DNA from: Pecten maximus
Lineage: Eukaryota
Reading direction: 5' to 3'
NCBI RefSeq assembly: GCF_902652985.1
Contig: NC_047018.1
Coordinates: 13,454,001-13,518,000, forward strand
DNA length: 64,000 bases
Shown here: one piece after another, positions 1,407 through 26,573 of the stretch
How positions within the stretch are numbered: position 1 is the first letter of the stretch
Layout: each line of letters starts with the position of its first letter
The notes under the pieces: model-generated
What the model was told of the DNA's origin: nothing
The model's database searches: none
What the model saw: the letters and a program-made list of their open reading frames with translations, nothing else
Translations under genes and position numbers: made by a program

Positions 1407-2206
1407 CTGTATGAACATTTTTTTAATACGACAAAGACTGCACTTCCAATCCATGATTGGCACGTCTTCTATGTGTCACCGCAAACACGACTTATCCTAT
1501 AGTACCTTATGAAACTTTTACTCTGGATGAAAAATAAGTCCTATTTCAAGTCCTATGATATGATCCGGTTATCATACTTACCAATCCGATAGAATCATTT
1601 CTTACTTTAAAATTAATGAGGACATATTTATCATGGGGCCCAGCATGTTAACATAAGGCTTATCATGGTGACATTGAAGTGCAATTTATACTGGTGTTTG
1701 GGCATCAATTCATTTTATCGTTTAATGATAGTGGGTCTATTACCTTTTCAAATTTTAAATGATATTATCACTTAGTCCATAACTTATTCGAGAATACATT
1801 GTATTTTATTGAACTTCTTTAATTTCCTCCACATTCAAAACCCGGTTTCACCTCGAAACAATCGCTCCCAAGGCATAATCGTTCTCTTATGCTAATTTGT
1901 AACTGAGTACGACGTTATTTTCTGTTTCAAAAGGCATGCTTGCGCACGATTTTAAATTGTTTTCGTAAGGTACGACAAGGTGGATATGGCGTAAAGTTAA
2001 ACAAGTTTTTTGCGTAAGTTAAGAAGTTTTTGTGAAACGATACCCAGGTATATACGTCTCTGTATAATCCTAAATTTTTTAACACAAGATCGTTCAGAAG
2101 CTTTGCAGTGCTGACTCTTTCAAACGCACAGATGCTCTGATTTGAACAAAGATTCGTCAATGTGACTTACGCAAAATTCGTAAGTTACGAATCTTTGTGA
2201 GACGAT

Positions 2207-5200: not shown

Positions 5201-5909
5201 AACAGACAATGTCTCTACAAGCCCTCTCCCTAGTGACAACGAGCAATATATATACAAGCCCTCTCCCTAGTGACAACAGGCAATGTCTATATAAGCCCTC
5301 TCCCTAGTGACAACAGGCTATGTCTATACAAGCCCTGTCCCTAGTGACAACGGGCAATGTCTATACAAGAACTCTCCCTAGTGACAACAGGCTATGTCTA
5401 TACAAGAACTCTCCCTAGTGACAACAGGCTATGTCTATACAAGAACTCTCCCTAGTGACAACGGGCAATGTCTATGCAAGCCGTCTCCCTAGGGACAACA
5501 GACAATGTCTATACAAGCCCTCTACCTAGTGACAACAGGCAATGTCTATACAAGCCCTCTACCTAGTGACAACAGGCAATGTCTATACAAGCCCTCTACC
5601 TAGTGACAACGGGCAATGTCTATATAAGCCCTCTCCCTAGTGACAACAGGCTATGTCTATACAAGTCCTCTACCTAGTGACAACAGGCTGTGTCTATACA
5701 AGCCCTCTCCCTAGTGACAACGGGCAATGTCTATATAAGCCCTTTCCCTAGTGACAACAGGCAATGTCTATACAAGCCCTCTCCCTAGTGACAACAGGCT
5801 ATGTCTATACAAGCCCTCTACCTAGTGACAACAGGCTATGTCTATACAAGCCCTCTACCTAGTGACAACAGGCAATGTCCATACAAGCCCTCTACCTAGT
5901 GACAACAGG
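2207..5909. repeat. 37-bp minisatellite (ctatacaagccctctccctagtgacaacaggcaatgt), roughly 95 copies
   Basis: Period read directly (caag at 2221 and 2258). The array is interrupted by a SINE at 2707-2886. Confidence 0.97.
2707..2886 (+). mobile_element. tRNA-derived SINE inserted in the 37-bp array
   Basis: A-box tggccgagtgg (2718-2728), B-box gttcgaaacc (2778-2787), central ttctccgggtactccggct block and an (aaac)n tail. Flanked by the 12-bp direct repeat caacaggcaatg (2695-2706 and 2887-2898). Confidence 0.9.
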
Positions 5910-6818
5910 GATACATTTAAACAATGATAGAATTATAATTTAATCATTAACATCAGAAGTATATTGGATTTGAATTTAAATTTCCATGTATTGAAGTTCA
6001 ATAGATGGCAATTAAAATTCTAATATTTTGTATATGTATACATCTATATCCAAATACACATATACGTGTTCAGAATGTCAGATCAGCATGCATATGCTTC
6101 CTATCAGTAGAAAATATTAATGTTGACAAGTAGGGTACCTGTATCAGCATGTCATGTAATTTAACTTGTGACCTCTCTAAACTAGAATAAATAGTAAAAT
6201 GACTTGTGTTTTGGACGTGTGTCGTATCTATGCGATGCTGTATGGACTGACAGGAACACTTACTATTCCGGAGCTCTCCGAGGTCGATAATATCACTATT
6301 TCACAATATTACAAAACAAAATGTAAAATATACACAAAGTTTTATTACTAAGATCAATAGGTAACATAAATGATATCAACATGATTTGGTAAATACTACA
6401 CTAATTCATAGAATTGTAGATTTTCTATCTAGAAAACACACTTTAAAATGCTGAATTTTATATAATCACAAAAGGGTTGATGTCTTGTGGTTTACACACT
6501 AATAACAGTCGTATCCACTTTACCAGAAAATACATTTGTAATAACCAGCTTACAAATGTAGGTAATTTGGATGGATTATCTTGATCGCTTGCTTGAGTTA
6601 ATAAAGGCGTACCATTTAATTTCAGTTATTATAATATGAACGCTGTTACAAACAGTGGTATACAGATATATATAATATAATAGTTGATAAGATCAACAAT
6701 GCATGTTATAAAATGTGCATGCGAGAATATACAGAGGCATGAAAGTATTCATAATATGTTGATGAAATTTGGTTTGATTGAACAATAATTATATATATAA
6801 TCATAATAAAGTACTTAT

Positions 6819-8594
6819 TCAGAGACGCGAGCTCAATTCGAGAGGGTGATTATCTTGCACAGTAAGACAACTTTTATCATGTCCAACCTCGGTTAATGTT
6901 GTATCTTTTGTATGGGGATTTCTGGACTGAGAAACAGAACTGTTAGATAAAGTAGGGTCTAATATTGTATGACCTCTCGATGAATTAATGCCCCTTTTCT
7001 TGTATGCAATATAGAGTTCGTAAACCCTCTTATTGCATACAAACGAGAGCATGATGAACACGCCTTGTCCAGCGAGCAAAACGATAAATAGATATACAAA
7101 AACATCCTGATTGAAAATTTCAGCAATAAAACCAAACAGCCAGGCCACTCCTGTCAGAGTTGAAAGCTTTACATAAATTAAAAATCGTTTCGAGTGATGG
7201 CGACAGGTTGAGGACCTGGACATATCCGGAAGCTGGCTGACTTTAACTATTACAATACAGAACATTACAATATTTGCTACAACGAGTACCATAACCGGTA
7301 GTGTGAAACTATACAATAGAGCATTCGTGTCGTTAATAAAACATATCCGGATTCCGTAACCAGACCTTCCGTTAGTTACGACGCTGTACACACTTCGACC
7401 CAGGACGAATAATGCGCTGCCGCCGTAACTGTAAACAAGAGATATTACAAAATGGCGTCTTTTTTCTTCCTCTGTCAAAACGTATTGCCTGTCTAAATGA
7501 TTAAATACGCGGAACATATGTATTGAACATACGTTCATGATAAATACACTTGCTAACATTGTCAAATGGATTGTAATTCCAAATACTTCACACAAGAAAC
7601 CGATCTTGACAGCACCGGCTCCAAAGGTAAACAGGACATGAGCGACAGTCAGTGTTGCGCACAAAGCCATTGTGAAAAGTCCAGGAAGTGTCCTTAAAAC
7701 TGGAAACAGAATATACGTTACCATAGTTACGATAAGACATATAACTGACAAACTTGAACACACGAGAGACACTAATACTTTACCTAAATCTTCTTCACGT
7801 GAAACAATGTTATCTGGCAAATGAGATGCAAAAAATGTATCTGCACAAATCAGGACAGACGACATATCGTCAGAGAAGATGCATTTTTCTGGCTGAAAAC
7901 AGGAGTTATGCATATCAAAGCACACCTTGTTAGAGTGACGTGTTACATTATAATCATTCAGAGATATGTTCACATGTGGACATAAAAAGGTTGGTACCAA
8001 CCGTGATACCCACGGTTTGAAAGGACAATAGCTAATTTCATCATAAGTTTCAATATTCATTTTATCTCCATTTGAAGGATCTCTGTATTGTCTGTCTAGC
8101 GGAAATACTATCCTAAATTTGTTGGAACTAGATTCGAACTCATAAAAATTACCGCCAACTACTTCCGGTTTTAAGTCAGTACAAAGCAAAGGTCCTGTAT
8201 TGGTTCCGGATTCAATATGGAGCGCAGATGTATCCAGAAGGTTCTCTGCTACTTCCTTGGGATCGTGGTAATCTTGCACAAAGAGTTCCACGTGAATGAC
8301 TAGATAGTCTGTATTGATTATTGTCTCACTGGAACAGTTGTTACTAGGAAACAGGACAGTTAAACCACAGACATATTTATAATAACCAATAAGTATCAAG
8401 TGCGTTTTCACATATTCCTGGATCAGACGAGGTGTAAGGCGAAGACACAGGTCACAATTCGTATGGTAGGATGGCAATGTATTGAATCTAAGGAACATCT
8501 CGTATCTCTGCGAAGCTACATTGCTGAAGGCATTTTCACACACTCCATTGCTGTATCTGAACGGTGGTGAGCAGGTGATCTCGCGGCAAATGTT
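6819..8594 (-). CDS. GPCR-A coding exon 2: membrane-proximal ectodomain, class-B-type (Methuselah/adhesion-like) 7TM and C-tail
   Basis: Open frame with seven hydrophobic segments and motifs LRTLPG, GYG-x3-CFI, KLSTLTGVAWLFGF and QGVFIMLSFVC. Acceptor ttacag|aac at 8594, phase 0. Stop codon at 6819-6821. Confidence 0.93.
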   Translation of the reverse strand, partial: NICREITCSPPFRYSNGVCENAFSNVASQRYEMFLRFNTLPSYHTNCDLCLRLTPRLIQEYVKTHLILIGYYKYVCGLTVLFPSNNCSSETIINTDYLVIHVELFVQDYHDPKEVAENLLDTSALHIESGTNTGPLLCTDLKPEVVGGNFYEFESSSNKFRIVFPLDRQYRDPSNGDKMNIETYDEISYCPFKPWVSRLVPTFLCPHVNISLNDYNVTRHSNKVCFDMHNSCFQPEKCIFSDDMSSVLICADTFFASHLPDNIVSREEDLGKVLVSLVCSSLSVICLIVTMVTYILFPVLRTLPGLFTMALCATLTVAHVLFTFGAGAVKIGFLCEVFGITIHLTMLASVFIMNVCSIHMFRVFNHLDRQYVLTEEEKRRHFVISLVYSYGGSALFVLGRSVYSVVTNGRSGYGIRICFINDTNALLYSFTLPVMVLVVANIVMFCIVIVKVSQLPDMSRSSTCRHHSKRFLIYVKLSTLTGVAWLFGFIAEIFNQDVFVYLFIVLLAGQGVFIMLSFVCNKRVYELYIAYKKRGINSSRGHTILDPTLSNSSVSQSRNPHTKDTTLTEVGHDKSCLTVQDNHPLELSSRL

Positions 8595-8858
8595 CTGTAA
8601 CATAAATACAATGATGCAATATACGGGTTTGCAACAGTCAGTAGTCAGTTAATATCGGGATATTATACATCTTTAATTCAACTCTGCCTTTTTTACTCGG
8701 TAAAAAAAGGAACTGGTAAAGTCGACGTCCGCACTCCCCCACCCCCCAGCTCATGTATTATGTCTCTTGAGATATCTAAAATGAAATGCATATCCATTCT
8801 ATATAGCCCGTTTTACAAATATTTTCGATTTACAAATATCACCGTCGGTATCAATTAT

Positions 8859-9510
8859 CCGGCCTTTATCGGTATAATATCTCCGGCCTATATCGGTATA
8901 ATATATCCGGCCTGTATTGGTATACTATCTCCGGCCTGTATCGGTATAAGATCTTCGGCCTGTATCGGTATAATATCTCCGGCCTGTATCGGTATAAGAT
9001 CTCCGGCCTGTATCGGTATAATATCTCCGGCCTGTATCGGTATAATATCTCCGGCCTGTATCGGTATAATATCTCCGGCCTGTATTGGTATACTATCTCC
9101 GGCCTGTATCGGTATAATATCTCGGCCTGTATCGGTATAATATCTCCGGCCTGTATCGGTATAATACCTTCGGCCTGTATCGGTATAATATCTCGGCCTG
9201 TATCGGTATACTATCTCCGGCCTGTATCGGTATAATATCTCGGGCTGTATCGGTATAATATCTCCGGCCTGTATCGGTATAATATCTCGGCCTGTATCGG
9301 TATAATATCTCCGGCCTGTATCGGTATAATATCTCCGGCCTGTATCGGTATAATATCTCCGGCCTGTATTGGTATAATATCTCCGGCCTGTATCGGTATA
9401 ATATCTCCGGCCTGTATCGGTATAATATCTCCGGCCTGTATTGGTATACTATCTCCGGCCTGTATCGGTATAATATCTCCGGCCTGTATCGGTATAATAT
9501 CTCATGCCTT
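8859..9510. repeat. 24-bp minisatellite (cggcctgtatcggtataatatctc) in the GPCR-A intron
   Basis: Direct periodicity. It explains the IISPACIG repeats of ORF 8760..9140. Confidence 0.96.
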
Positions 9511-10585
9511 TATCGGAATGATAAAACGGTAAAGCAGGGGGTTAAGAGATGTATACTTCTGCTTTCCCTCGACCATGACTCGACCTGGTCTCGGGAAACC
9601 CGACACTTGCCCCCATACTTTAACTGTTTGATATCCTTTGCTTTGATGAGACGTGATACTTTGCAATAAGAACTGTCTCTATATGATGATTCAGTTCGTT
9701 ATATTGTTAAAACAGCTACAGTGTAGGTATGTATGACAAAATCTATAATATTTGTTCATAGTTTGCCATCTTTTGATCAATTCCAAGTTAGAATCTCTGT
9801 TGTCTTTTAAACTATTGTTAAATCACTTAGGTACACATATTATGTAAAATATTTGTTAAATTTATTATTGTTAATCGACTTTCAGAATGATATGTGTTCA
9901 TTCCTGTTTTATTAGACTAGCTTCTTTGAAATATCCGAAGCATTCCCAATTGATAAAATGAGGGGTTAGCGTGTTAGGTCCCTAGGACCTAGAAGGACGA
10001 ACCTGCTATTCTGTGTGAAATGAACACTTACAATGGAGGAATAGATAACGAAATGATCGCCAACTGTATTACAGATAAAACAAGAAATATCTTTTAAAAA
10101 CATATATGGCATAATTTTAATGCTGGTGTGGCTATAATGTAAAACTGCTGGTGAAATGAATTAACGAACTAATTGTGTTTCAGCACAGATAACAAAATTA
10201 TATCAGCTTGATTCAATAAAGAAAAAAACCTACTTTTTTCTGTTATCAAGTGGGCTTTTATATTGTCTATACCCCGAACTGGAATACAAGTTAATGTGTA
10301 GTATATATACGTACATCAAAATCCAGTTCGGATTCTTCCTACTATAGGAATTACATGGTGGCATTGTTTAAGTTCGGAGATGTTTAGACATCAAAATAAT
10401 GAAAAAATATGAACATTTGAGACCTCGGATAGCATATGTTATAAAAGCTGAAATACCTATCAGACAGCATTATTCATTATTACTGTAGCAGTATTACGTA
10501 CACACTATCGCGGGGGAGAAAACCCAATTTCCATTTAACGATTGCAGAAGAAACAGTAAAACTGCTTATTAAGAAACATACTTAC

Positions 10586-11629
10586 CTTGTAAGTGTCAAA
10601 AAGGAAATTCGGGGCGCATACTTGGGTGGTGTCCTTTGCTTGCACAGTTGAAGAATCCTGTATGAAATTAAACAATGCTGCAAACGATGTTAAACCTAGG
10701 TTAATTCCGCCTCCTCGCCCACCTCCCGCAATTGTATATCCAAATACGCATGAGGGGATTATTGAAGCATTAGTGTTACAAATATAGCAGAAGACGTTCT
10801 TGTAATATGTATCAGCATATTCATAGGTATTTCGATAGTGTCTACACGCCCAGTCTATGTCACGGTTATATTCTGTCCAGAGACCAGTGACGTTACACTC
10901 TGTATACATATAGGTTTCATCTTCACAGGGAAATGGAACGGGAACATCTGGAGGGTGGTAAAATAAATTGCAGCCATCTTCGTTAATAATGAAACTGAAC
11001 AACTCTCTGGCTTGATGTGGAAACACAAACTGACTTCCCCGACAGCTAAAACTTGTTTTCCAATTGATCAAGTCCTTGTCATGTTCCCAGTTACAGTATC
11101 CACAGTACCTGTTACGATAAGTCTCGTTTGTTCTTACAGAGGAAACAGGCAGATAATTTGTCACATCTGTCGGCGTAACGTTTCCACTACGGCACTTTCT
11201 GGCTATGTTCTCATCCACAAACGTTTTCTGACAATCGCCTATCATCAGGTAATGATCCATTGTGTTCAGTCCGTTTTCTTCAAAAGGTTTAAGTTGCGAT
11301 AGAACACAAGAACTTCCTTTTTGATATAGAACATCTAAACTATCCCCTGCTAGTGCTTTGTCTATACAACAACTTCCTGTTATCACACATGTATCCTCAC
11401 AGGAACAGGGTACACAGCAACTTAGAGTGCTTCTATTTTCCTTTACATTTCCTATACTACACAGACGCTGGGAGGTACAGTATAACAGCTGATCCATGAT
11501 CAACATTTGATGGGTTTTATTTAGTATGTGTTCTGTCATGTTGAATGCCCATTGCGTGGTGTCGTTAGAGAGGGCACATGGTTGGACCAATAATGAAATA
11601 AACACCAACATCTTTACAGTTGCTGCCAT
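10586..11629 (-). CDS. GPCR-A coding exon 1: signal peptide and Cys-rich (somatomedin-B-like) ectodomain
   Basis: ATG at 11629, just after acceptor ttttcag|ataaaa. Hydrophobic N-terminus, CCxPCSCxxxCxxxGxCC and two Y[RK]Nx[YF]CxxCN motifs. Donor aag|gtaagt after 10586. 1044 nt, phase 0, in frame with exon 2. Confidence 0.92.
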
Positions 11630-11846
11630 TTTTATCTGAAAATATATATACCCCGTCATCTATTAAAATGTGCACATCAAAAATGAAAATAACAAATGTA
11701 TTCGAAAACTAAATTTCGAAAATCCAATGCTCAATACCGTGTGGTGTCTAAGTTATTAACATTAAGATAGGTACCACTTTAACACACCTGCTATTGTACT
11801 AAACAGTCGTGAAATATTACTCCTGTTAGCGTGCAATAAGTGAAAG

Positions 11847-12697
11847 GTTCGGTATAATTGGTGAAATGTCCCGTATTATTGTTGGAAATCTGGTATATTT
11901 GGTGAAATGTCCGGTAAAATTGGTGAAATATCCGGTATAATTGGTAAAAGTCCGGTATAGCTGGTGAAATATTGGTGAAATATCCGGTATAATTGGTAAA
12001 AGTCCGGTATAGCTGGTGAAATATTGCTGAAATATCCGGTATAATTGGTGAAATGCCCGGTATAGCTGGTGAAATATTGATGAAATATCCGGTATAATTG
12101 GTGAAATGCCCGGTATAGCTGGTGAAATATTGGTGAAATATCCGGTATAATTGGTGAAATGCCCGGTATAGCTGGTGAAATATTGGTGAAATATCCGGTA
12201 TAATTGGTAAAAGTCCGGTATAGCTGGTGAAATATTGATGAAATATCCGGTATAATTGGTGAAATGCCCGGTATAGCTGGTGAAATATTGATGAAATATC
12301 CGGTATAATTGGTGAAATGCCCGGTATAGCTGGTGAAATATTGGTGAAATATCCGGTATAATTGGTAAAAGTCCGGTATAGCTGGTGAAATATTGCTGAA
12401 ATATCCGGTATAATTGGTGAAATGCCCGGTATAGCTGGTGAAATATTGATGAAATATCCGGTATAATTGGTGAAATGCCCGGTATAGCTGGTGAAATATT
12501 GGTGAAATATCCGGTATAATTGGTAAAAGTCCGGTATAGCTGGTGAAATATTGATGAAATATCCGGTATAATTGGTGAAATGCCCGGTATAGCTGGTGAA
12601 ATATTGGTGAAATATCCGGTATAATTGGTAAAAGTCCGGTATAGCTGGTGAAATATTGATGAAATATCCGGTATAATTGGTGAAACGTCAGGTATGA
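11847..12697. repeat. 52/53-bp compound minisatellite (tccggtataattggtgaaatgcccggtatagctggtgaaatattggtgaaata)
   Basis: Period of 53 read between 12141 and 12194, with a 52-bp variant. Built from shorter ggtgaaat subunits. Confidence 0.95.
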
Positions 12698-13195
12698 TTA
12701 TTCTTTCTGCTTTGCACAAAATGATAACATAGTGTAAATATCTGTTTAAATTTTGTTTTTATAAATCTTGAATTAAATGGCAATCAAATAATCTAGATAT
12801 CAATTTTTCTAAAGAAAATCAAACTTCTTAATAAAGATGAATGTGAACTATTAGACAAATTTATACCAAACCACAACGTATAAACCTGACGAAATCGCCC
12901 CTAACTCTGGAGTAGAACATATTAGACCATATTGACATTTGAAAGGTGCATATGACAGTTGTGCAGTGGTAGCCAGAGTTTGACCCCAACATTAAAGCTC
13001 ATCATCATTATAACAATCGTATGAATTAATAACATCACTGGTATAGATTATATACCCCAAAGTGTTGCATGTTAGGGCGAGTATTAATACCAGATGTACA
13101 TTACTGGTATTAATGCCTTCAGGGACTACTTTCTAAAATCGAGATGTCAACAAATTTGATGAACACGGATGACTCGCCTACCAGTGGAAGATTTG

Positions 13196-13656
13196 ACTTA
13201 CCTGTCGAGTGCGTGCAACATATCGATGCGTCGTGTAAAATAAATATTTACTTGAATGCTGACATAATATTGTTATTATTTCTGTACACAGACGATATCA
13301 TTTGTATTTCCGTATTTTACATATTATCTAGAGACCTACCCATCAGACAGGACAAAGCCATTGCTTTCACAAACGTTTGTCACCAGGTAGAGCATGCTCA
13401 GTTTATAGCAATGTAGGATGGCAGCATATTCTGTTTACATAAATCACTTGTCTATGAAGGGTGGGGTTTAAAAAGCCATGCACTTCCATTTTCAATTAAT
13501 CCTGACGGAAAAAATATCAGACATCAGATCTATACATATATTAATTATTGATGGGATTGTTTTAATGATGACGAGGGATTCCGTATATAAGCGGCCAATA
13601 TTATATTAGTTGTCTCATCGACTGAGTTACTAGCGGTGTAGCTAGTGAGCGTAAGT
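13196..13656. promoter_or_regulatory. Candidate bidirectional promoter and non-coding first exons of GPCR-A and GPCR-B
   Basis: Both ATGs lie 6 nt after splice acceptors, implying upstream exons. Minus strand: TATAAA at 13402-13407 and CAG|GTAAGT donor at 13202/13201. Plus strand: TATATAA at 13584-13590 and GTAAGT donor at 13651. Motif evidence only. Confidence 0.4.
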
Positions 13657-13969
13657 TGTAGATGGTGGCTGATCTCTTTACCATATAGTTCTTTGTTGTT
13701 AATAAGAACATGTTTCGTAGACTTTGAACAGTATTGTCAAATGTTTATTCGACACCAATACTGGCTGTTTAACTTCGTGACAATGCCTAATTATGATTGT
13801 TAACATAATTCTCTTTTCGCATTCCTTTCTAGTATTTGATCATACAGTGTCACTATATATTGTATATAATTTTTTAATAATATTTTTATCTAGCCTCAAA
13901 ATATACATGATTTAGCACAATTTTTCATTGAGTTTATGTTGATGGCGTGATTTATATTTTCAGAACAAA

Positions 13970-15019
13970 ATGGCAGCAACTGTAAAGATGTTGGTGTTTA
14001 TTTCATTATTGGTCCAACCTGACAGTATACCATGTGCCCTCTCTAATGACACCACGCAATGGGCATTCAACATGACAGAACACATACAAAATAAAACCCA
14101 TCAGATGTTGATCATGGATCAGCTGTTATACTGTACCTCCCAGCGTCTGTGTAGTATAGGAAATGTAAAGGAAAATATAAGCACTCTAAGTTGCTGCGTA
14201 CCCTGCTCCTGTGAGGATACATGTGTGATAACAGGAAGTTGTTGTATAGACAAAGCACTAGCACAGGACAGTTTAGATGTTCTGTATCAAAAAGGAAGTT
14301 CTTGTGTTTTATCACAACTTAAACCTTTCGAAGAAAACGGACTGAACACAATGGATCTTTACCTGATGATAGGCGATTGTCAGAAAACGTTTGTGGATGA
14401 GAACATCGTCAGAAAGTGCCGAAGTGGAAACGTTACGCCGACAAATGTGACAAACTACCTGCCTGTTTCCTCTGTAAAAACGAACGAGACTTATCGTAAT
14501 AGGTACTGTGGATACTGTAACTGGGAACATGACAAGGACTTGATCAATTGGAAAACAAGTTTTAGCTGTCGGGGAAGTCAGTTTGTGTTTCCACATCAAG
14601 CCAGAGAGCTGTTAAGTTTCATTATTAACGAAGATGGCTGCAATTTATTTTACCACCCTCCAGATGTTCCCGTTCCATTTCCCTGTGAAGATGAAACCTA
14701 TATGTATACAGAGTGTAACGTCACCGGTCTCTGGACAGAATATAACCGTGACATAGACTGGGCGTGTAGACACTATCGAAATACCTATGAATATGATTTT
14801 ACATTTTACAAGAACGCCTTTTGCTATATTTGTAATACGTATGCCTTACCACCACCAATTTGTATTGTCACACCTAGTCAGCCGCCTTCGACAATCTTGA
14901 ATCCCATTTATATAACATCGTTTGCAGCATTGTTCAATTTCATCGATGACACTCCGAAAGTGCAATCCTCGGAAACAGTTCATCTATGTCCGAAAGATCA
15001 TAAATTTGACACGTATAAG
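13970..15019 (+). CDS. GPCR-B coding exon 1: signal peptide and Cys-rich (somatomedin-B-like) ectodomain
   Basis: Acceptor ttttcag|aacaaaATG. Near-identical to GPCR-A exon 1. Donor aag|gtaagg after 15019. 1050 nt, phase 0. Confidence 0.92.
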
Positions 15020-15069
15020 GTAAGGACGTTAGTGCTCTTATCAACAGAACTTTACAACAAATCTTATTC

Positions 15070-15330
15070 ATGGGTGATACTGATAAATTTTGTCAGAGGA
15101 ACACATTGTTTTCTGGGGTTATAATGGTAGATTTTGTCAGAGGAACACCTTGTTTTCTGAGGTGATAATGATAGATTTTGTCGCAGGAACAAATGACATT
15201 CTTGGGTGATATGATGATAGGTTTTGTTGTAAAAGCAAATGTCTTTTTGAGGTGATAATGATAGGTTTTGTCTGATAAACAAATATCTTTCTGGAGTCAT
15301 AATGATAGATTTTGTCTGAGGGACAAATGT
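15070..15330. repeat. Degenerate ~44-bp tandem repeat in the GPCR-B intron
   Basis: Recurring gataatgatagattttgtc...ggaaca units, about 6 copies. Confidence 0.75.
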
Positions 15331-15926
15331 AAATTGTATATTGAATTATTACCTGTACTATACGAATAGACGTTCCTTTTCAACCAGTATTACATTTTAT
15401 ATATGTCACGTTCACCAGACAACTGACAATTGACGTGCATACAGTGCTCACTTGTATCAGTTGGGGAGATAAAGGCCAATTACATCCAATACCTGTAATA
15501 TGAACAACTTCAATTTAGCGTATTGCGGGTACAATCCACTAGGCTATTATATAATGATTATCCTTGACAAGAGAATATCTAAACGGTCAATTTACAAATA
15601 ACTCGTCACTCCCGTCTACTTCTGTTGATTTTGTCAAGGTTTATTTGTAATACACTGCACTTATATTTCAACACTGAATGATATATATAATTAATAGGGC
15701 TAACGTCTAATCCAATTCTCTGTCAATAAAAAATAACATATTTCCTCACACACGTGGTGTAAAAACCGCACGGGTCATTTATATTCCGGGTGTTCACACT
15801 TTTCAATTGAATACGTAAATTATTATAACTAGAAACAGATTAATGCGTACCTATTTCATATATTGTTTATAGAAGCTGATATGTGTGCACTTCTGTACTA
15901 AAGACTATTTTTTAATTATATTACAG

Positions 15927-17699
15927 AATATTTGCCGCGAGATCACCTGCTCACCACCGTTTAGATACAGCAATGGAGTGTGTGAGAATGCCTTCAGCAA
16001 TGTAGCTTCGCAGAGATACGAGATGTTCCTTAGATTCAATACATTGCCATCCTACCATACGAATTGTGACCTGTGTCTTCGCCTTTCACCTCGTCTGATC
16101 CAGGAATATGTGAAAACGCACTTGATACTTATTGGTTATTATAAACATGTCTGTGGTTTAACTGTCCTGTTTCCTAGTAACAACTGTTCTAGTGAAACAA
16201 TAGTCAATACAAGCTATCTAGTCATTCACCTGGAATTCTTTATACAAAATTTCCATGATCCCATTGATGTTGCCAGGCGTTTCCTTAACCCATCTGTATT
16301 TCTGCCTGAATCACTTGAAGGAGTTACTGTTTGTATTGACTTAAAACCAAAAGTACTTGGCGGTAAATTTTATGACTTTGAATATGGTTTCAGCGAATAT
16401 GATTACGTTTATCCACTAGACAGACAATACAGAGATCCTTCAAATGGAGATAAAATGAATATTGAAACTTATGATGAAATTAGCTATTGTCCTTTCAAAC
16501 CGTGGGTATCACGGTTGGTACCAGCCTTTTTATGTCCACATGTGAACATATCTCTGAATGAATATAATGTAACACGTCACTCTAACAAGGTGTGTTTTGA
16601 TATGCATAACTCCTGTTTTCAGCCAGAGGAATGCATCTTCTCTGACGATATGTCATCTGTCTTGATTTGTGCTGATACATTTTTTGCGTCTTATTTGCCA
16701 AATAACATTGTTCCACGTGAAGAAGATTTAGGTAAAGTATTAGTGTCTCTCGTGTGCTCAAGTTTGTCAGTTATATGTCTCATCGTTACTATGGTAACGT
16801 ATATTCTATTTCCAGTTTTAAGGACACTTCCTGGCCTTTTCACAATGGCTTTGTGCGCAACACTGACTGTCGCTCATGTACTGTTTACCTTTGGAGCCGG
16901 TGCTGTCAAGATCGGTTTCTTGTGTGAAGTATTTGGAATTACAATCCATTTGACAATGTTAACAAGTGTATTTCTTATGAACGTATGCTCAGTACATATG
17001 TTCCGCGTATTCAATCATTTAGACAGGCAATATGTTTTGACTGCGGAAGAAAAAAGACGCCATTTTGTGATATCTCTTGTTTATAGTTACGGCGGCAGCG
17101 CATTATTCGTCCTGGGTCGAAGTGTGTACAGCGTCGTAACTAACGGAAGGTCTGGTTACGGAATCCGGATATGTTTTATAAACGACACGAATGCTCTATT
17201 GTATAGTTTCACACTACCGGTTATGGTACTCGTTGTAGCAAATATTGTAATGTTCTGTATTGTAATAGTTAAAGTCAGCCAGCTTCCGGATATGTCCAGG
17301 TCCTCAACCTGTCGCCATCACTCAAAGCGATTTTTGATTTATGTAAAGCTTTCAACTCTGACAGGAGTGGCCTGGCTGTTTGGTTTTATTGCTGAAATTT
17401 CCAATCAGGATGTTTTTGTATATCTTTTTATCGTTTTGCTCGCTGGACAAGGCGTGTTCATCATGCTTTCGTTTGTATGCAATAAGAGGGTTTATGAACT
17501 CTATATTGCATACAAGAAAAGGGGCATTAACCAAACGATTTCGAGAGGTCATACAATGCTAGACACTTCTTTATCCAACAGCTCTGTTTCTCAGTTAAGA
17601 AAACCTCATACCAGAGAACCAACGATATCGACTGAGATTGACACACACTGCCATTCTGTGCGAGATAACATCCCTCTCGAATTCAGCACGAATCTCTGA
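15927..17699 (+). CDS. GPCR-B coding exon 2: ectodomain, class-B-type 7TM and C-tail
   Basis: Acceptor ttacag|aat at 15927. Same 7TM motifs as GPCR-A. Stop TGA at 17697-17699. Confidence 0.93.
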   Translation, partial: NICREITCSPPFRYSNGVCENAFSNVASQRYEMFLRFNTLPSYHTNCDLCLRLSPRLIQEYVKTHLILIGYYKHVCGLTVLFPSNNCSSETIVNTSYLVIHLEFFIQNFHDPIDVARRFLNPSVFLPESLEGVTVCIDLKPKVLGGKFYDFEYGFSEYDYVYPLDRQYRDPSNGDKMNIETYDEISYCPFKPWVSRLVPAFLCPHVNISLNEYNVTRHSNKVCFDMHNSCFQPEECIFSDDMSSVLICADTFFASYLPNNIVPREEDLGKVLVSLVCSSLSVICLIVTMVTYILFPVLRTLPGLFTMALCATLTVAHVLFTFGAGAVKIGFLCEVFGITIHLTMLTSVFLMNVCSVHMFRVFNHLDRQYVLTAEEKRRHFVISLVYSYGGSALFVLGRSVYSVVTNGRSGYGIRICFINDTNALLYSFTLPVMVLVVANIVMFCIVIVKVSQLPDMSRSSTCRHHSKRFLIYVKLSTLTGVAWLFGFIAEISNQDVFVYLFIVLLAGQGVFIMLSFVCNKRVYELYIAYKKRGINQTISRGHTMLDTSLSNSSVSQLRKPHTREPTISTEIDTHCHSVRDNIPLEFSTNL

Positions 17700-18114
17700 C
17701 GACGTTAAGCGTTATTTTGGTACATTTTAAATGTGTGCTATCGCCTTGACGGCACCGGTAACTTAATTATGACGACACCTTTAGTAAAAATATCATTAGT
17801 TAACCAACAAAAGTTGTAACACACCCTGTGACCTTGAATATGATTCAAGGTCTTTTCTTCGCAGACTTTTTCAAGCCTGTCTTAGGAACCTGCCAGTCAA
17901 ATGCCATGACTATCCATCGTATCCATGGTTTCTTTGTTTTTATCGCCAGGGTCATTTTGAGGAGGGGGGTCTGATTGTAATAGTTGGTGATTACTTCACA
18001 GAATAACATACTGGATGCAATTAGGGCAATTAAGGTAGATTGTTTTACCCAAGGACATAACAACGCCATAACCTACTAAGCAATCTTTGCTTAAAAAACC
18101 TATCGGCCAAATAT

Positions 18115-18185
18115 AATGACGGACGACAGACAATCGACGACAGACAACCGACAACAGACAACCGACGACAGACGAACGGACGTGT
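18115..18185. repeat. Imperfect gacg/gaca microsatellite, probably the end of a decayed non-autonomous element
   Basis: gacggacgacagacaatcgacgacagacaaccgac. A similar tract ends the element at 36015-36050. Confidence 0.55.
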
Positions 18186-18820
18186 GTATGAAAGTATTTG
18201 GTTTGTAGTCACGTGATTGTTTCTTGATCTTGACCAGTGACAAACGGAAAGTTGACCTACCACCGACTTTACCCAACACCCCTTCGACCCGCGCCCTTTC
18301 AATTCGCCCGAAATCTCGCCACTAGTCACTCCTGACTGAAACTAGCAACGATTCGGTTGTTTATATACCTCTGGTAACTTTTACTACCAAGGTCATATAT
18401 ACGGAGTTGATGGGGATACTGCCCGCATGGACGATGGTCCGCTCAGGAAGGTAGGTAAGTGTATACATGTATGTTTTAGTTTAGTCCGTTCTATTTTTGC
18501 GTGTGACAATTGTGTTTAACGTGTATTTCTGTGTAACTCCAAAATAAAGAAATTGAAGATAATGGAAGAATTGTCGTTATTTACACCCCGACTTTAACGA
18601 TATTTTTTTCTGATTTTCAAATGTTGTTAATACTGTAGTATTTTCAAATGGAATCATACTTAACATAATATCAACAGATTTTCGTATAAGAAAGTGTATA
18701 AAGTATTCCTTTCGAAATAAAATTGATATTAAAATCCATTTAGTCTTTTTATATTAAACCTATATTTAAGTTACATCAGCTGGGGCTAAACTCAGTGGCA
18801 TAACGGTCTCAACCATCCCT

Positions 18821-19952
18821 GAGTGACAAAAACACAAAGAGTGACACCTTGGTCATTATAAACCCTAGGGTAACAAATACATAACGAGTGACACCTTGGT
18901 CATTATAAACCCTAGGGTGACAAAAACATAACGAGTGACACCTTGGTCATTATAAACCCTAGGGTAACAAAAACATAACGAGTTACACCTTGGTCATTAT
19001 AAACCCTAGGGTGACAAAAACATAACGAGTTACACCTTGGTCATTATCAACACAACGGTGACAAAAACATAACGAGTTACACCTTGGTCATTATAAACCC
19101 TAGGGTGACAAATACATAACGAGTGACACCTTGGTCATTATAAACCCTAGGGTGACAAAAACATAACGAGTTAAACCTTGGTCATTATAAACCCTAGGGT
19201 GACAAAAACATAACGAGTTACACCTTGGTCATTATAAACCCTAGGGTAACAAAAACATAACCAGTTACACCTTGGTCATTATAAACCCTAGGGTGACAAA
19301 AACATAACGAGTTAAACCTTGGTCATTATAAACCCTAGGGTAACAAAAACATAACCAGTTACACCTTGGTCATTATAAACCCTAGGGTGACAAAAACATA
19401 ACGAGTTAAACCTTGGTCATTATAAACCCTAGGGTAACAAAAACATAACGAGTTACACCTTGGTCATTATAAACCCTAGGGTGACAAAAACATTACGAGT
19501 TAAACCTTGGTCATTATAAACCCAAGGGTAACAAAAACACAACGAGTGACACCTTGGTCATTATAAACCCAAGGGTGATAAATACATAACCAGTGACACC
19601 TTGGTCATTATAAACCCAAGGGTGACAAATACACAACCAGTGACACCTTGGTCATTATAAACCCAAGGGTGACAAATACACAACGAGTGACACCTTGGTC
19701 ATTATAAACCCAAGGGTGACAAATACATAACGAGTGACACCTTGGTCATTATAAACCCAAGGTGACAAATACATAACGAGTGACACCTTGGTCATTATAA
19801 ACCCAAGGGTGACAAATACACAACGAGTGACACCTTGGTCATTATAAACCCAAGGGTGACAAATACACAACGAGTGACACCTTAGTCATTACAAACCCAA
19901 GGATATATATATCGAGTGACACCATGGTCATTATAAACCCTAGGGTGACAAA
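18821..19952. repeat. 47-bp minisatellite (gagtgacaccttggtcattataaaccctagggtgacaaaaacataac), about 24 copies
   Basis: Period of 47 (gtgac at 18841 and 18888). Confidence 0.96.
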
Positions 19953-22900
19953 CCTTTAACAAATGACATTATTTTCACCACAAATCCAAGGGTGTGTCTA
20001 CACCAAATAACACAGGGCTGAGTGGACAATTAATATTCTATTCTATATTAAATATTTATGCAATAATAATTGAAACCCGTACCCGACCACGGATGCCATT
20101 AACGTAATGGATTATATAGATACGGGTATATTAATCATCGTTGTGTGTCATATCAAGAACAGTCAGATATTGCTATAAAATCTCGAAACTATTAGCGGGT
20201 CAATAAGCTTTCAGTCGCACGATAATGAATAAAATATTAAATATGGATTGAGTTGTGTCAGTCAGCTTTGTAATGTATTATAATAAATCTGTATATTTCC
20301 AAATCAACTGACTAAGGATGGTCTGATGTTCGAGCACTATAACCTTATAAACGGAGTGATTAATTTGAGTGGAGACAAATTGTATTGGAACGAGCAACTC
20401 ACTACTACACTGACATCAGGTTTACAATGTTAAGCTCATGTTTCTATAATCTTTAATTTCAATTTTATGATAACTGTAAAACCAATAACAATCGCACAGA
20501 GTTTCTGATTACAACGTTGGTAGTAATTACAACATGTACTACTTCACACGTTACGGGTACATTACCACTTCTGTTTTCATTCCGAAATTTTATAATGAAA
20601 TGAAATACAAAATAAAAATCATGATTCAGCGAAATTGAAACAATCAAGTAACGTCATCGATAATGTCAAACATTGTAAAGTACAACTGAAGGCCCCATGG
20701 TTTTTGTTCACAAATACAACTTACAACAGTAATTACAGGGTGAAAATTATTAATCACTGTGTAATCAAGAAAGAGATATCTCAATCATTGGGATAAGAGC
20801 ATTTTGTCTATGATACACGGGTGAAATATTCTTATAGAGTGGGGTTTTCCCCAAAAGAAGAGTAAGGAGATGAATGGAAAGATTTGTACAAGTTTCCGGA
20901 AGGCTCACATTTAGTCTATTGAACCAGGACAGTACACACCGACCTGATGTATATACTCTTGCATTTATTACTATACCAAATGAAACAGCGTATGCCACAT
21001 ACCTAATTGTAAAACGGAAATGTCCAAACTATTTTATCTGATGTTCCCTGAAGGCACGAAGGGAGGACATGGGTATAAATGATAAATGAATATCAGTTCA
21101 TTGCTCCTTTTAGCAATTCGGCTTACTGTCCTTCCTTCATACTTTGACCTTAAAAGCGCTCCAGCTGCAGCCTTGATATAATCACCACTCTCATGGCAGT
21201 GTTATGGTACATATATTTGAATACGTTATAAGCCTGTCTGTATATCATCCGGGTAGAGGAAATGTATGGCATTGAAGTTTGTTTTACTTTTTTTGATCAC
21301 TTTGTAATAAAAAAAAGAAAGAAAATTAATGTAAACACCTATGCAAACATGCTTTGATCATTGTAAATGCATAAACAATAAAAGTATAATAAAAATAGAT
21401 TTCACTGCATACATAAAATTGAACGACCAATCATTCAAGCTGAACTCTCATAAGGGTTAAATTTCTACCAGTAGGAAATAATGTATGGTGGAGTACTGTT
21501 GAAGTAACAAGGCTTTGATCACAAATGAACGCATAGGTGTTTCGATCGTGCACCATAGGTGAGAATCGTAGAGACAAGAGATGCAGAAAACGTAGAAGGC
21601 GATTCGTCAGGTGGGAAGAACGGCGTGTGGCATGTGCCGTTCTCCTGCACGTGCGCAAAGCTCAGTCAAAGTGCAACGCATTATGCATTGTCGTGCGATC
21701 CACTACTGGAAAAATCATTCGCACGATTGATCATCGTGTGATTCATTCTGGCGATCTGAAACTGATTGCATGATCAATCGCGGTCTCTGCCAGTCAGTCG
21801 TAAGATCAGTCGTAGCCTTTCGCAATTGATCGTAGCTATTTCCAACAGGTCGCAGCTTATCGAGTGATTGATAATTCGATCATTCGATCATATATATTGC
21901 CACGTGTACAAACGTGTAACCATGCCGCCGTCATTTTGTCGGCATTGCCATTGAGAAGTCGCAAAGGGCTTGCAATCAGTTGATGAATGTTGTGAATGGC
22001 GCTACCACCAAATATCAGTATAATATCAGTATAATATAGTATAATATCAGTATAATATAAATGAAGTATGCTATAAATGTTCCTAATTCCACGCGTATAA
22101 TATGACGTTATTAACCGCATGGATATCGTCAGACCTCTATGTACAAGTTTTGAAAAGAGCTACATCCTTTTTACCACCAAACATAGATATGGCGTGTTCT
22201 AAAATGTCGATTAGTAGACATATGACAAAATTACCGATCATTTTTGCCTCAAGAAACAACAAATTGTTTTATGTTGACGATAAAGAAAATAAGTATATCG
22301 GCATTTCCTATAAATAACACAAAAGCACTGAATGCATATTTGCTATAATGTTGGGTTTAATATATTAAATATATCTATATAAAAAAAAACGCACCTCAAG
22401 AGATACGAATCAACTCGTGATTCAACATTGAGATTCCGGAAGGAATTTGATGCCGTTCGTTTGCTAATCATGTTTGCCTCTTAACTGTCGATCTTGTAAA
22501 ATGTAAAATTAGATTCCACTTTCATTTTTTTTTTGTCTAGCACATGTATTTTTAACCACTTCTCGTTCTAAGTATTTTGGTTACATAATGAAGATTCTGG
22601 TAACGAACGACAAGAAGAAGCAAAAAAAGTGACTAGGGAGTAAGGCGAGGAAGTACCGGTATAATGATATATCATCTATATAGTGGAGTTAAGGCACCAA
22701 AGGGCTCCCATAACTTCATTGTTAATGTATGAACGCATTACCATGTATTAATCATAATATTGCTTTGATAATATTTTAGTTTCAACTCTCACCAAGGACA
22801 TCATATACGTGATCATATAGCTAGAGTCACCTTATATAGATACATGTACAACGGCGTGTAAAAATATCTGAATCATGTTTGCTGTCCATACTGCTGAATG

Positions 22901-23559
22901 AAGGTAATTATGAAATATTAATTATGGCTTATATTGTATGCATTTGGTATTTATGATATGAGTCTTATTATGGCAGGAGTTATCGTTCTTTGTGTAAGGT
23001 AGATTGAATGAAACTGCGTGTTAAATAAATGAAAATAAATGGTACTTGTTCAACATGATAAAAACCCAAGAACTCAAGAAGTTAATATTTATGGATGTCG
23101 AATGGTGCCAAAGGAAATCTGAAGAATACAATGTACTTGAAATTGCACGTTGTTTGAATATATATTTTAGAACCTAGCTTATTCTAGAAAGATGGAACTT
23201 GAATCTTGGTTTCCAATTTTTTAGATGCCAAAATCGGTTTTTCTCATGGATTCCTAAAACATTATTAAGCAAACCAATGTGACTAATGCATTTTAGTATC
23301 TCACGTTTGGTTTACCTAGATGATAGTATTCGTGCAGTTTTCCTTTCAATAACTACAATTATATACCTTTATAAATGCTAACATGAACAATGGTCTGTTT
23401 TAAATTAGATAGTCAACCAGAAAAGGGACAACACCTATCATTATCTACACCACAATAATATGGTTCCCATTGATGGACCTTGACGTTGGGCTTCGACATG
23501 CTCCTTAAGATTCGTGTAAAACCTTGATATCGTTTCTGTTCAGATTTACCAGAGGTACC

Positions 23560-24564
23560 ATGTCTACTACCACGACAAGTGTGGCTTTTATAATCCTTGG
23601 GGCAACAATTCTTTTACCGACGTCTGTAAACACAACAAACGACTTTCTACAGTACAGCAACAGTGGCCGTTTACCGGACATAGCTCAGTTGTTTGGAGAC
23701 TATTGTCCGGGCATTAGTCTCTGTACAACTAACCAATCAGGAAGCCCAGCTAATGTTAGATGGTGTTGTAATACCTGCAGCTGTTCTCTTAAATGCTTCC
23801 AAGAAGGAAACTGTTGTCCAGATGTACTTCAATATACAAAGGGGACTTTGAAAGAGACCTGTGTTCGACCGCAGTATCTGGCATACGGTGTCACAAATTC
23901 AAGTGCGAGGACGTCTTACTTTTTTATCCATACATGTTTACCAGAGTTCAAAAATAAAAACATTGCTGAAAACTGTGAAATCATTCCCCGAAATCCGAGA
24001 AATTTAGAAGACTTCCTTTCTACCCTGCCCGTCTCGAGGGTGAACTCGAGTCTGTCATATCGAAATATTCACTGTGCTCTGTGTAACGGAGAATCTCGGG
24101 AGGATTTGGTTCCGTGGACGATTGAGTTAGTGTGCGATTCCCGAAACGACGTATTAACCACTTCCTTTGATGAACTGTTGTATGTTTTAAATCGAGACAA
24201 GAAATGTAACCTGTTGTACCGTGCGCCCATTGACATAGGAGTCAGGACTCGTTATTGTAACTGGGGATACATCACAAGTTGTAATCAGACTGGGAATATG
24301 GAGAGCTATGATGAAACCCTAGTCGACATGTGTGGTGCTTTTACTTCGATATATGCAAGCAGGTATCGAAATGTGTTCTGTTATCTGTGTAATAAGAACG
24401 TACAAGGAGGAAACGATTGTCCAGAATACGAACCAATAACTGGCGGCTTTGATATCATGTCGTTCACAGCCATTTTGGATTTTAGGATACTAAGTTCTAC
24501 AGTCCCTTCCCCACCACATGACACCGAGAAGTGTTCATCAAATCAGCAGTACGACAGATACAAG
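23560..24564 (+). CDS. GPCR-C coding exon 1: signal peptide and Cys-rich ectodomain
   Basis: ATG at 23560 after acceptor ctgttcag. CCNTCSCSLKCFQEGNCC, YRNIHCALCN and YRNVFCYLCN motifs. Donor aag|gtatgt after 24564, at the same DxYK position as in A and B. Confidence 0.9.
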
Positions 24565-24872
24565 GTATGTATTGATCGCAGGAAAGCATTTAAGTCTGAG
24601 GAAAAGTCACCCTCTTCAAAATTGTGAATATTAGATTATATACAAGTAAACACATGCGATATGTCTAGCATCACTATCTAGACCTAATGTCTCAAAGTTC
24701 CAAATTACAATATCTGGTCAGCAATAGTTACTACTCTACCCAGAAAGTGACATGTGTTTGTCATTTCCGAGTTTGTGTGTGATTTTTGTTTTCCCAATGT
24801 AAGGTGGCCTTGTATAGAACGCACTAAAATGCACTCTATAATACTAATTATGTCAGATGTTGTTCTTTTCAG

Positions 24873-26573
24873 GACGTCTGTAGAAACATGACGTGTGCTA
24901 CGGGGTCAATATACATGGACGGGGAGTGTAAACGACAATACACCAGTGAGGCTTTCAAGTCTTATGACGTCTATTTCCGGATAACACCGGAACATGATTT
25001 CTGCGTGGCTTCCCTTGACCTGTTTGGTACCGAGCTGAGTATGTCTGTATTCTCAACACTTAATGGCTCCTCCTCTCTCAGGAACAGTATATGTTCGTTC
25101 GCTCCTCTATTCATGCCCGGAAATGAAGACTGCGACGGCAAGAACTTATCATCAGTAACATACGCACTGATCCATGTAGGAATCTACTTGTCTGCCGTTC
25201 ATTCTGTTGACCAGGTATTGACAGAGTTGTCGTTACTGGACAACAGTTTAATCGTTGTCGGTTCCCACAGATTCACAATAACAATCGATTCGAGATATTA
25301 TGGAGAAATAGCGTTTGACTCCCTCATTGACACACGGCGTTATACGGATCCCGATACAAAGAAGATACTCTTGAGGCTGCACTCCAATCGTATCGTGTCC
25401 AACATAGGCCAGTATCCTATACGACACCTGCGCGTGACGGAGTTGATATACTGCAGACGCGTGTTTTTGCCATCCAAAGAGTATAGCGTCACTTTTAATG
25501 AAGGCTCCATCTGTCTGGAAATGATCAGTCTATTTCTGACGAACGGAACATATAAACAAAAGCAGAACGGTCTAGAAATGTGTGCAGATCTTTATTTTGC
25601 GCATGTTCAAAAATTGTCACGTGATAGCCCAAAGACTGAGGTTTGTGACTCTATACATGTTAGTACATGGAATGCGTTGGGTCTTATGTCGTTGATTCCT
25701 GCAACCATGTCGATAATTTCCCTTATTTTGACTATTTTGACGTATGGCTTATTTGAATCTTTGCGAACAACACCCGGTAAAAACAATATGTTCCTATCCA
25801 TAAACATCCTCGTCACTCAGTGTCTGTTTCAGTTTGGGTCGGGACAGAGATCTTTGGGAGTAGGTTGTGTTGTGATCGGTGTCTTGATGCACTACTTCTG
25901 GCTGTCGGCCGTCGTCTGGACGAACATTTGTTCCTTTCACATGTTTAGAGTTTTCTCTAGCTTGAAAGCAAAGACCATGAGTTCACTGAGAGACGAGAAA
26001 AAACACATGGTAACGTACATAATGTATTCAGTGTTGACTCCCTTGGTAGTCGTGGCTGTAAACATCCTTGTTAACTTAGTGACGTCAGACTGGTCAGACA
26101 TCGGTTACGGAGGCTGCGTCTGTTATATTTCATCAAAACATATGATTATTTACACTTTTGCAATTCCTTTATTTGTTATTCTTTTGCTTAACATAATATA
26201 TTTTGTAATTGTGGTAATGGCTATTCGACGATCACAACATTCCAAACTTTCTTCTAACAAAGACAATGTATCGATCTTTGTGTATGTGAAGCTTTCCTGT
26301 GTGACCGGCGCCTCCTGGATATTTGGCTTTCTATACATCTGGAAAAGATATGACGTATTTTGTTACCTTTTCGTTATTCTTACTGCCGGACAGGGGATCT
26401 TCATCTTTTTGTCGTTCATTTGTTCCAAACGAGTTCTGAAAATGTACAGTAAATTAATGAGGTGTCCCAGTTCAAACAGAAACACATCCTCTTCCGGGAC
26501 AAATAAGCCGGTATTATCATACCTGTCGTCACATTCACAGAACAATGTACATCAATGTACAACCAGAATGTAA
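24873..26573 (+). CDS. GPCR-C coding exon 2: ectodomain, class-B-type 7TM and C-tail
   Basis: Acceptor cttttcag|gac gives DVCRNMTC, matching NICREITC in A and B. Motifs LRTTPG, HYFWLS, GYGGCVCYI, KLSCVTGASWIFGF and QGIFIFLSFIC. Stop TAA at 26571-26573. Confidence 0.92.
   Translation, partial: DVCRNMTCATGSIYMDGECKRQYTSEAFKSYDVYFRITPEHDFCVASLDLFGTELSMSVFSTLNGSSSLRNSICSFAPLFMPGNEDCDGKNLSSVTYALIHVGIYLSAVHSVDQVLTELSLLDNSLIVVGSHRFTITIDSRYYGEIAFDSLIDTRRYTDPDTKKILLRLHSNRIVSNIGQYPIRHLRVTELIYCRRVFLPSKEYSVTFNEGSICLEMISLFLTNGTYKQKQNGLEMCADLYFAHVQKLSRDSPKTEVCDSIHVSTWNALGLMSLIPATMSIISLILTILTYGLFESLRTTPGKNNMFLSINILVTQCLFQFGSGQRSLGVGCVVIGVLMHYFWLSAVVWTNICSFHMFRVFSSLKAKTMSSLRDEKKHMVTYIMYSVLTPLVVVAVNILVNLVTSDWSDIGYGGCVCYISSKHMIIYTFAIPLFVILLLNIIYFVIVVMAIRRSQHSKLSSNKDNVSIFVYVKLSCVTGASWIFGFLYIWKRYDVFCYLFVILTAGQGIFIFLSFICSKRVLKMYSKLMRCPSSNRNTSSSGTNKPVLSYLSSHSQNNVHQCTTRM

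Follow-up and report, generated by a model that had tools for sequence, protein, structure and literature searches.

The analysed window comprises 64,000 nucleotides of the scallop Pecten maximus genome (contig NC_047018.1, positions 13,454,001 to 13,518,000 of the forward strand) and contains three class B2 (7tm_2) receptor genes, here termed A, B and C, which all follow an identical two-exon plan. Their ectodomains carry a short hydrophobic motif that resembles the Stachel, the tethered agonist of adhesion GPCRs (G protein-coupled receptors), and this motif is the subject of the present analysis. Window sequences were searched exon by exon, and the database proteins P0001, P0002 and P0039 and their relatives were employed as full-length sequences. 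Gene A (LOC117325290; P0002, 949 amino acids (aa)) is located on the reverse strand. Its first coding exon (10586-11659) is an open reading frame (ORF) that ends at an AAG↓GTAAGT donor, is identical to the NCBI model P0002 and encodes the signal peptide, a Somatomedin B (SMB)-like cysteine cluster, the cysteine-rich DUF8401 module and a linker that contains the motif. Exon 2 (6819-8594; acceptor ttacag↓AAC) encodes the juxtamembrane domain (7809-8594), the seven-transmembrane (7TM) domain (about 6987-7802; 7tm_2 match with E=1.7e-14), the C-tail and the stop codon. Gene B (LOC117325291; P0001, 940 aa) is found on the forward strand, with exon 1 (13970-15019) matching the NCBI protein P0001 and exon 2 (15927-17699; acceptor attacag↓AAT; 7tm_2 E=3.6e-15) again including the C-tail and stop codon; the juxtamembrane domain is encoded at 15927-16712 and the 7TM domain, which matches adhesion-GPCR 7TMs, at about 16719-17534. 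Gene C is also encoded on the forward strand. Exon 1 (about 23560-24564) is an open frame with a signal-peptide-like start that can be aligned with A and B and has full-length orthologs (P0019, P0165 and P0166), and exon 2 (24873-26573; acceptor ttttcag↓GAC; 7tm_2 E=3.9e-16) contains the juxtamembrane domain (24873-25649), the 7TM domain (about 25659-26459), the C-tail and the stop codon. In all three genes exon 1 ends in phase 0 at an AAG↓GT donor, the GT directly following the last exon base (10586 in A, 24564 in C), and the acceptors are canonical. The junctions of A and B agree with the NCBI proteins P0002 and P0001.

The splice joint of gene C (24564 to 24873) was recovered in a contig of the public run X2, which skips 308 nt with GT..AG ends and reproduces the predicted junction exactly. 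The NCBI model of this gene, P0039, has 602 aa and is named 'adhesion G protein-coupled receptor L4-like'; its first residue is the Met of MSFTAILDF at 24457, and it contains neither a signal peptide nor the DUF8401 module. The frame is open upstream from 23560 and homologous to the full-length orthologs, and a run X2 contig covers 23988-24128. The start Met of gene C would lie at 23560, and the P0039 start is probably a truncated annotation, or it may be an internal start that exposes the motif. The spliced contig (record 7 of run X2) is a single contig of low depth that fits the window from 24448 on with 9 differences in 115 nt, and the 14 letters before 24448 do not match the window. It may represent an allele or a close paralog with a different sequence in the linker that directly precedes the motif.

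The PF00002 (7tm_2) domain was detected in exon 2 of A, B and C with E-values of 1e-14 to 1e-16 and was the only Pfam match in these proteins. The solved sequences closest to the 7TM region are ADGRL3 (1.8e-12), followed by ADGRL2, ADGRG2, ADGRE5 and ADGRD1. Fold comparisons gave Foldseek E-values of about 1e-8 and VIA Z-scores of 25-28, the top matches being adhesion GPCRs throughout and class B1 receptors reaching Z<=24. The 7TM domain is of the adhesion type (class B2) by sequence and by fold. Of 1.84 billion representatives searched with P0001 by phmmer, 4673 matched at E<=1e-3, a number that drops to 506 at the stricter E<=1e-30; the named relatives come from bivalves and gastropods, and Atlas clusters indicate Mollusca and Annelida. 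The three genes fall into a large lophotrochozoan family whose adhesion-type receptors have no GAIN/GPS domain at the level of sequence, and a literature search found no paper that mentions DUF8401 (PF28443) or this receptor family.

The ectodomains consist of three parts: (i) a cysteine-rich N-terminal module composed of the SMB-like cluster and DUF8401, (ii) a disordered inter-domain linker of 30-60 residues with the conserved motif at its centre and (iii) an alpha/beta juxtamembrane domain of roughly 260 aa that is joined directly to the first transmembrane helix (TM1). PF28443.1, named DUF8401 in the Atlas and in Pfam 38.1, is present in the precomputed annotation of P0001-P0005, P0016, P0017 and P0019, and the nearest Atlas clusters contain DUF8401 with or without Somatomedin_B. 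The Somatomedin B family PF01033 was not matched at E<=1 by any window protein. A conserved C-x-C-x3-C-x5-CC-x-D cluster is present in the N-terminal module, and PF01033 is found in 29-65% of the members of related Atlas clusters. The exon 1 module occurs at dozens of loci in the P. maximus genome, in many cases with a repeated [YF]-[KR]-N-x-x-C-x-x-C-N unit.

The first-pass annotation had described the motif as TSFAALFNF in A and B and MSFTAILDF in C, and translation located it at 10664-10690 on the reverse strand in A, at 14915-14941 on the forward strand in B (residues 316-324) and at 24457-24483 on the forward strand in C (residues 1-9 of P0039). Its reported conservation at the DNA level also held, as 30 of 31 nt are identical between A and B within an otherwise diverged island, which begins immediately behind the CxxCN motif and extends up to the splice donor. 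As had been noted, the motif lies far upstream of TM1, which begins near residue 615 in B and is about 290 aa away. In an alignment of 70 sequences (numbered after P0001, gene B), the family consensus was x-S-F-[S/T/A]-A-L-[L/F]-[D/N]-F. Position 317 is S, P or T; F318 is retained in 47 of 64 sequences, A is found at position 320 in 29/64 and L at position 321 in 45/64 (with I or V in a further 14). Position 322 is L, F, I or M in nearly all sequences (62/63), followed by D or N at position 323 in 38 and F324 in 40 of 63. The columns that flank the motif on both sides are gappy, with an entropy of more than 3 bits. The motif is preceded by an invariant cysteine (C298). Behind it follow C340 and a [YF]-D pair, with C353, C358 and C369 coming next where exon 2 begins. 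A disulfide between C298 and C340 that closes the loop-motif-loop segment was considered and judged less likely; the cysteine counts are better explained by C298 belonging to DUF8401 and C340, C353, C358 and C369 forming a four-cysteine hairpin module. In a regular expression scan, this motif arrangement was present in 58 of 182 proteins, with 0-37 aa (median 13) before the motif (linker 1) and 11-33 aa (median 16) behind it (linker 2), and more distant paralogs in the same genome retain a variant in the same place, for example TFRSIFSV. Because the motif columns are conserved between variable flanks, the motif appears as a conserved island in the middle of the linker that is not peculiar to A, B and C; it is conserved family-wide and beyond chance.

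The receptors had also been described as lacking a GAIN domain and a GPS motif before TM1, and this description agrees with Pfam, pattern and profile searches and with the predicted secondary structure. Neither PF01825 nor PF16489 was matched by A, B or C (E<=1) or by 10 diverse relatives (E<=0.1). The patterns C.C.H[LIMVF][ST] and HL[ST]xF are absent from A, B, C and all of the 182 family proteins, and no autoproteolytic H-L↓T/S site was found before the motif or before TM1. At the level of sequence the receptors can be considered GAIN-less. The secondary structure of the AlphaFold2 (AF2) models of B and C lacks the six-helix subdomain A of GAIN. In B, the predicted juxtamembrane domain is composed of hairpins (344-371), a beta-alpha-beta-beta-alpha unit (379-475), strands up to residue 598 and a helix (599-604). 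A profile of this domain found no solved relative among the sequences of the Protein Data Bank. Structure leads from the Atlas are weak, with template modelling scores below 0.5 throughout, and comprise ferredoxin-like folds (Cas6, Rep, a SEA cluster) and a single cluster with ADGRG4/GPS; the wide VIA search with the whole model was filled by 7TM matches, and the inactive full-length CD97 (entry 8ikj) was aligned over the 7TM domain only. One further candidate, in which the DUF8401 repeat C-N-x-T-G-x-W...A-C...[YF]-[KR]-N-x-F-C-x-x-C-N represents a degenerate GPS with the loop at its cleavage site, was rejected, since AF2 models the repeat as helical or alpha/beta and no Pfam GPS match is present.

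AF2 modelling was used to obtain a picture of the motif in the context of the receptor. The full-length model of gene B, built from the family alignment, had a mean predicted local distance difference test score (pLDDT) of 81.3 and a predicted template modelling score (pTM) of 0.56. The stretches on either side of the motif (residues 302-313 and 328-333) had pLDDT values below 50, the motif itself formed a short helix (318-322) within a block of pLDDT 60-67, and the interposed juxtamembrane domain exceeded 90. Gene C was modelled from the motif onward as P0039, which begins at the motif Met and hence corresponds to a natural loop-truncated form of C (mean pLDDT 87.3, pTM 0.70). Here, the motif reached a pLDDT of 69 over residues 1-10 with a helix at 3-6, and residues 13-20 fell below 50. 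One of the alternatives raised earlier was a buried core strand of the ectodomain; in the B model the motif is instead a short helix between disordered stretches and is a strand of neither the DUF8401 module nor the juxtamembrane domain.

As judged from structural alignments, both the full-length model of B and the motif-first model of C place the motif in the 7TM pocket. In B, residue 316 is the first to pair with the P1' residue of the Stachel in active-state chains that start at the Stachel, its partners being residues 567 of ADGRF1, 545 of ADGRD1, 531 of CD97, 842 of ADGRL3, 383 of GPR56 and 841 of ADGRG6. The title of entry 7wu5 identifies T567 of ADGRF1 as a GPS residue. These alignments extend over 257-268 residues with Z-scores of 25-28, and the register is kept in chains that start later (546 with 317, 553 with 324). 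Alignments to Stachel-less chains and to class B1 receptors start at B residues 609-622. The C model replicates this behavior: residue 1 pairs with 545/531/567/842/383, residue 2 with 546 and residue 9 with 553, and alignments to Stachel-less chains start at model residues 301-304. The Stachel register was seen across more than 20 active-state adhesion-GPCR structures with two paralogs that are about 30% identical, and the motif is predicted to occupy the place of the Stachel in the pocket, with F in position +3, L/I in position +6 and F/L in position +7. The published Stachel core is [F/Y]-[A/G]-[V/I]-L-[M/L/A] after S/T and a polar residue, and in ADGRL3 the L at +6 is held by a Trp of TM6 and a Trp of the second extracellular loop (ECL2) (PMC13470171). 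The TM6 Trp is retained in 67 of 69 family sequences, and 64 of 66 have an aromatic residue (Y, F or W) directly behind the invariant Cys of ECL2.

These models are most readily interpreted by a motif that is a real, GAIN-independent tethered ligand of the receptor's own orthosteric 7TM pocket, and we place the probability of this interpretation at about 50%. The motif would bind the pocket in the pose and register of a canonical adhesion-GPCR Stachel (F at +3, L/I at +6, F/L at +7), and its variable flanks would serve as flexible tethers that allow the peptide to reach the pocket over the interposed domain. From the models we infer that the motif may bind in the real protein and act there as an agonist. 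We favour a trigger in which occupancy would be set by ligand binding to the N-terminal module or by a pull on it, or else constitutive self-activation. Cleavage would not be required for the action of the peptide.

Several points weigh against this interpretation, the first being that the resemblance to the Stachel is weak and not significant by sequence alone. Of the 7 published Stachel residue classes, 5 are matched by A and B and 3 by C, and a 5/7 match occurs somewhere in 23% of shuffled ectodomains, so that a significance test on this score fails; the family-wide conservation does exceed chance. The pLDDT at the motif is 60-69 in both models, which were built on overlapping family alignments and are not fully independent. 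Docking was read from the first aligned pairs and aligned counts of VIA-align, not from measured contacts or predicted aligned error, and an open pocket may lead AF2 to bury a hydrophobic segment that is otherwise orphaned. Evidence of expression consists of a few low-depth contigs from runs that were only guessed to be RNA. We also know of no adhesion GPCR whose agonist is separated from TM1 by about 290 residues that include a folded domain.

The moderate pLDDT of the motif, the lack of significance of its similarity to the Stachel and its separation from TM1 by 290 aa that include a well-folded domain (pLDDT>90) would also suit a structural or interaction element of the ectodomain. Such an element might form a strand or helix packed against DUF8401 or the juxtamembrane domain in the native protein, mediate dimerisation or dock a partner protein, and the placement in the pocket would then be an AF2 artefact. 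This possibility, which is considered rather unlikely, has to account for a motif that AF2 packs on neither part of the ectodomain, even in the full-length model, and that falls into the exact Stachel register over the many structures compared and in both paralogs. Disordered linkers of variable length on both sides would also be unusual for a core element.

The linkers bear on a different proposal, made in the first-pass annotation, that the motif may be an internal agonist freed by cleavage of, or a pull on, a diversified bait loop. In A, the Gly-rich linker 1 comprises the 19 aa that separate the motif from the last Cys of DUF8401 (10691-10747, reverse strand; the equivalent stretch of B has a pLDDT below 50), and linker 2 has 15 variable aa up to the first juxtamembrane Cys (10619-10663, reverse strand). 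The corresponding segments of B, both on the forward strand, are a Pro-rich linker 1 (residues 299-315; 14864-14914) and a linker 2 with high column entropy (residues 325-339; 14942-14986), which contain the low-confidence stretches 302-313 and 328-333, respectively. C has 12 aa before the motif (24421-24456) and 16 aa behind it (24484-24531), also on the forward strand, the latter including the low-confidence residues 13-20 of P0039. Translation verified that the loops just before the motif are unrelated among A, B and C, and both linkers are predicted to be disordered. Among scallop orthologs and paralogs, the identity is 10-43% in the loop (linker 1) and 20-48% in the tail (linker 2), and no basic, furin-like or otherwise conserved cleavage motif was seen in the loops. 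Because the two linkers are equally variable and disordered, show no conserved protease site and permit docking of uncleaved full-length B in the model, the loops are better read as flexible tethers than as hypervariable baits. The tethered-ligand part of the earlier proposal gains support from the predicted docking, the conservation of the motif and the adhesion-type 7TM, but the bait and protease part is not supported.

Exposure of a cryptic agonist by an external protease, with the upstream loop of each paralog baiting another enzyme, is accordingly viewed as improbable, even though linker 1 is disordered and accessible and a cut there would shed the N-terminal module and turn the motif into the new N-terminus, the form of gene C that AF2 docks. 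This proposal could also draw on the Gly-rich and Pro-rich loop types, which seem to be kept in scallops even as the rest of the genes is homogenised. The prediction docks the uncleaved form as well, linker 2 varies as much as linker 1 and the loops lack a conserved cleavage motif, all of which argue against it.

The two loop types also speak against the earlier view that the loops vary freely, as they look common to several scallop species: the Gly-rich type is found in P0002, Ylistrum P0003 and Argopecten P0005, the Pro-rich type in P0001 and Argopecten P0004. Identity tables, from which the mosaic of A and B was judged, give 95% identity for exon 1 (residues 30-289) and 98% for the 7TM domain, as compared with 21% for the loop and 40% for the tail. 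Such a pattern could have arisen by gene conversion from which the linker island was spared, and selection in favour of two types of tether would fit as well; the apparent sharing of the island types with Argopecten and Ylistrum paralogs suggests gene conversion sparing the island. Combining these observations with the reading of the motif as a tethered ligand leads to a more tentative proposal. The receptors might constitute a GAIN-independent, non-autoproteolytic tethered-agonist system, in which a Stachel-equivalent on a flexible tether about 290 residues from TM1 reaches over a domain to the pocket. Scallop paralogs would keep Gly-rich flexible and Pro-rich stiff tethers despite gene conversion, and these would tune the ease with which the agonist is loaded or unloaded when ligand binding, force or proteolysis acts on the N-terminal module.

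It is very improbable that the stretch right before TM1, which reads ICADTFFAS in A and B and MCADLYFAH in C, is the true Stachel relic behind a degenerate, uncleavable GPS and that the upstream motif is unrelated: the stretch does occupy the canonical Stachel position relative to TM1 and has a conserved Cys (67/68), acidic residue (50/68) and aromatic residue (50/68), but the T and F-A of A and B are not kept in the family (consensus I-C-x-D-[D/T]-[Y/F]-hydrophobic), in the AF2 models it forms a helix that prolongs the last strand and stays outside the pocket, the Stachel-bearing chains are aligned with the upstream motif and not with this stretch, and no GPS or GAIN match is present.

Other features were detected in the window. 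Tandem arrays are located at 8845-9523 in the intron of A, at 11919-12695 between the head-to-head starts of A and B, at 15072-15329 in the intron of B and at 18823-19952 downstream of B, with periods of 24, 53/105/158, 44 and 47 nt, respectively. Translated array sequence accounts for the long 'ORFs' at 8760-9140 and 11826-12719, which are not genes. Mirror ORFs of about 95 aa are antisense to exon 1 in A (11012-11302, forward strand) and B (14312-14599, reverse strand); they owe their conservation entirely to the sense exons and are likely spurious. Pfam CABIT matches were obtained for two open frames at 33747-34589 (reverse strand, E 1.3e-10) and 57800-58930 (forward strand, E 2.6e-7) and are unrelated to the receptors. 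A strong strand skew is evident at 2001-6000 and 50001-56000 (GC skew -0.25 to -0.31, AT skew +0.2).

The GAIN domain is regarded as necessary for adhesion GPCRs to keep their tethered agonist in place and present it. The scallop receptors are similar to the Stachel systems of ADGRL3, ADGRD1, ADGRF1, ADGRG1, ADGRG2 and CD97 in their adhesion-type 7TM by sequence and fold, in the predicted pose and register of the peptide in the orthosteric pocket and in the retained TM6 Trp and aromatic residue after the ECL2 Cys. Their hydrophobic core pattern, [ST]-x-F-[A/S]-x-L-[M/L/F], is likewise that of the published core (PMC13470171). In contrast to these systems, they lack the GAIN domain, the GPS and the H-L↓T autoproteolysis site, and, instead of forming the final strand ahead of TM1, the peptide lies about 290 residues upstream on a disordered linker, where it stays joined on both sides and is separated from TM1 by a folded domain of roughly 260 aa. 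If the tethered-ligand interpretation is true, recognition of the Stachel by its pocket would be separable from GAIN, autoproteolysis and the position next to TM1, and the receptors would provide a natural system to ask what controls agonist loading, be it tether length and stiffness, force or cleavage. The protease-activated receptors PAR1-4 share the concept of an N-terminal tethered ligand, and the PAR1 ligand SFLLRN superficially resembles SF..LL[DN]; however, they belong to class A (7tm_1), whereas the scallop receptors are 7tm_2 proteins with no evident protease site and a predicted docking that does not involve cleavage. In the relaxin receptors RXFP1 and RXFP2, a distal LDLa module and its linker act as a tethered activator. 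They resemble the scallop receptors in an activating element that is far from TM1 with a large folded ectodomain in between, but are LGR-type class A receptors whose activator is a folded module with a linker and not a short Stachel-like peptide. Also comparable are the DUF8401/Somatomedin-B proteins of Mollusca and Annelida, as the full-length scallop proteins are themselves annotated with PF28443. DUF8401 is a domain of unknown function, and a tethered agonist in these proteins would offer a first functional handle on DUF8401 receptors.

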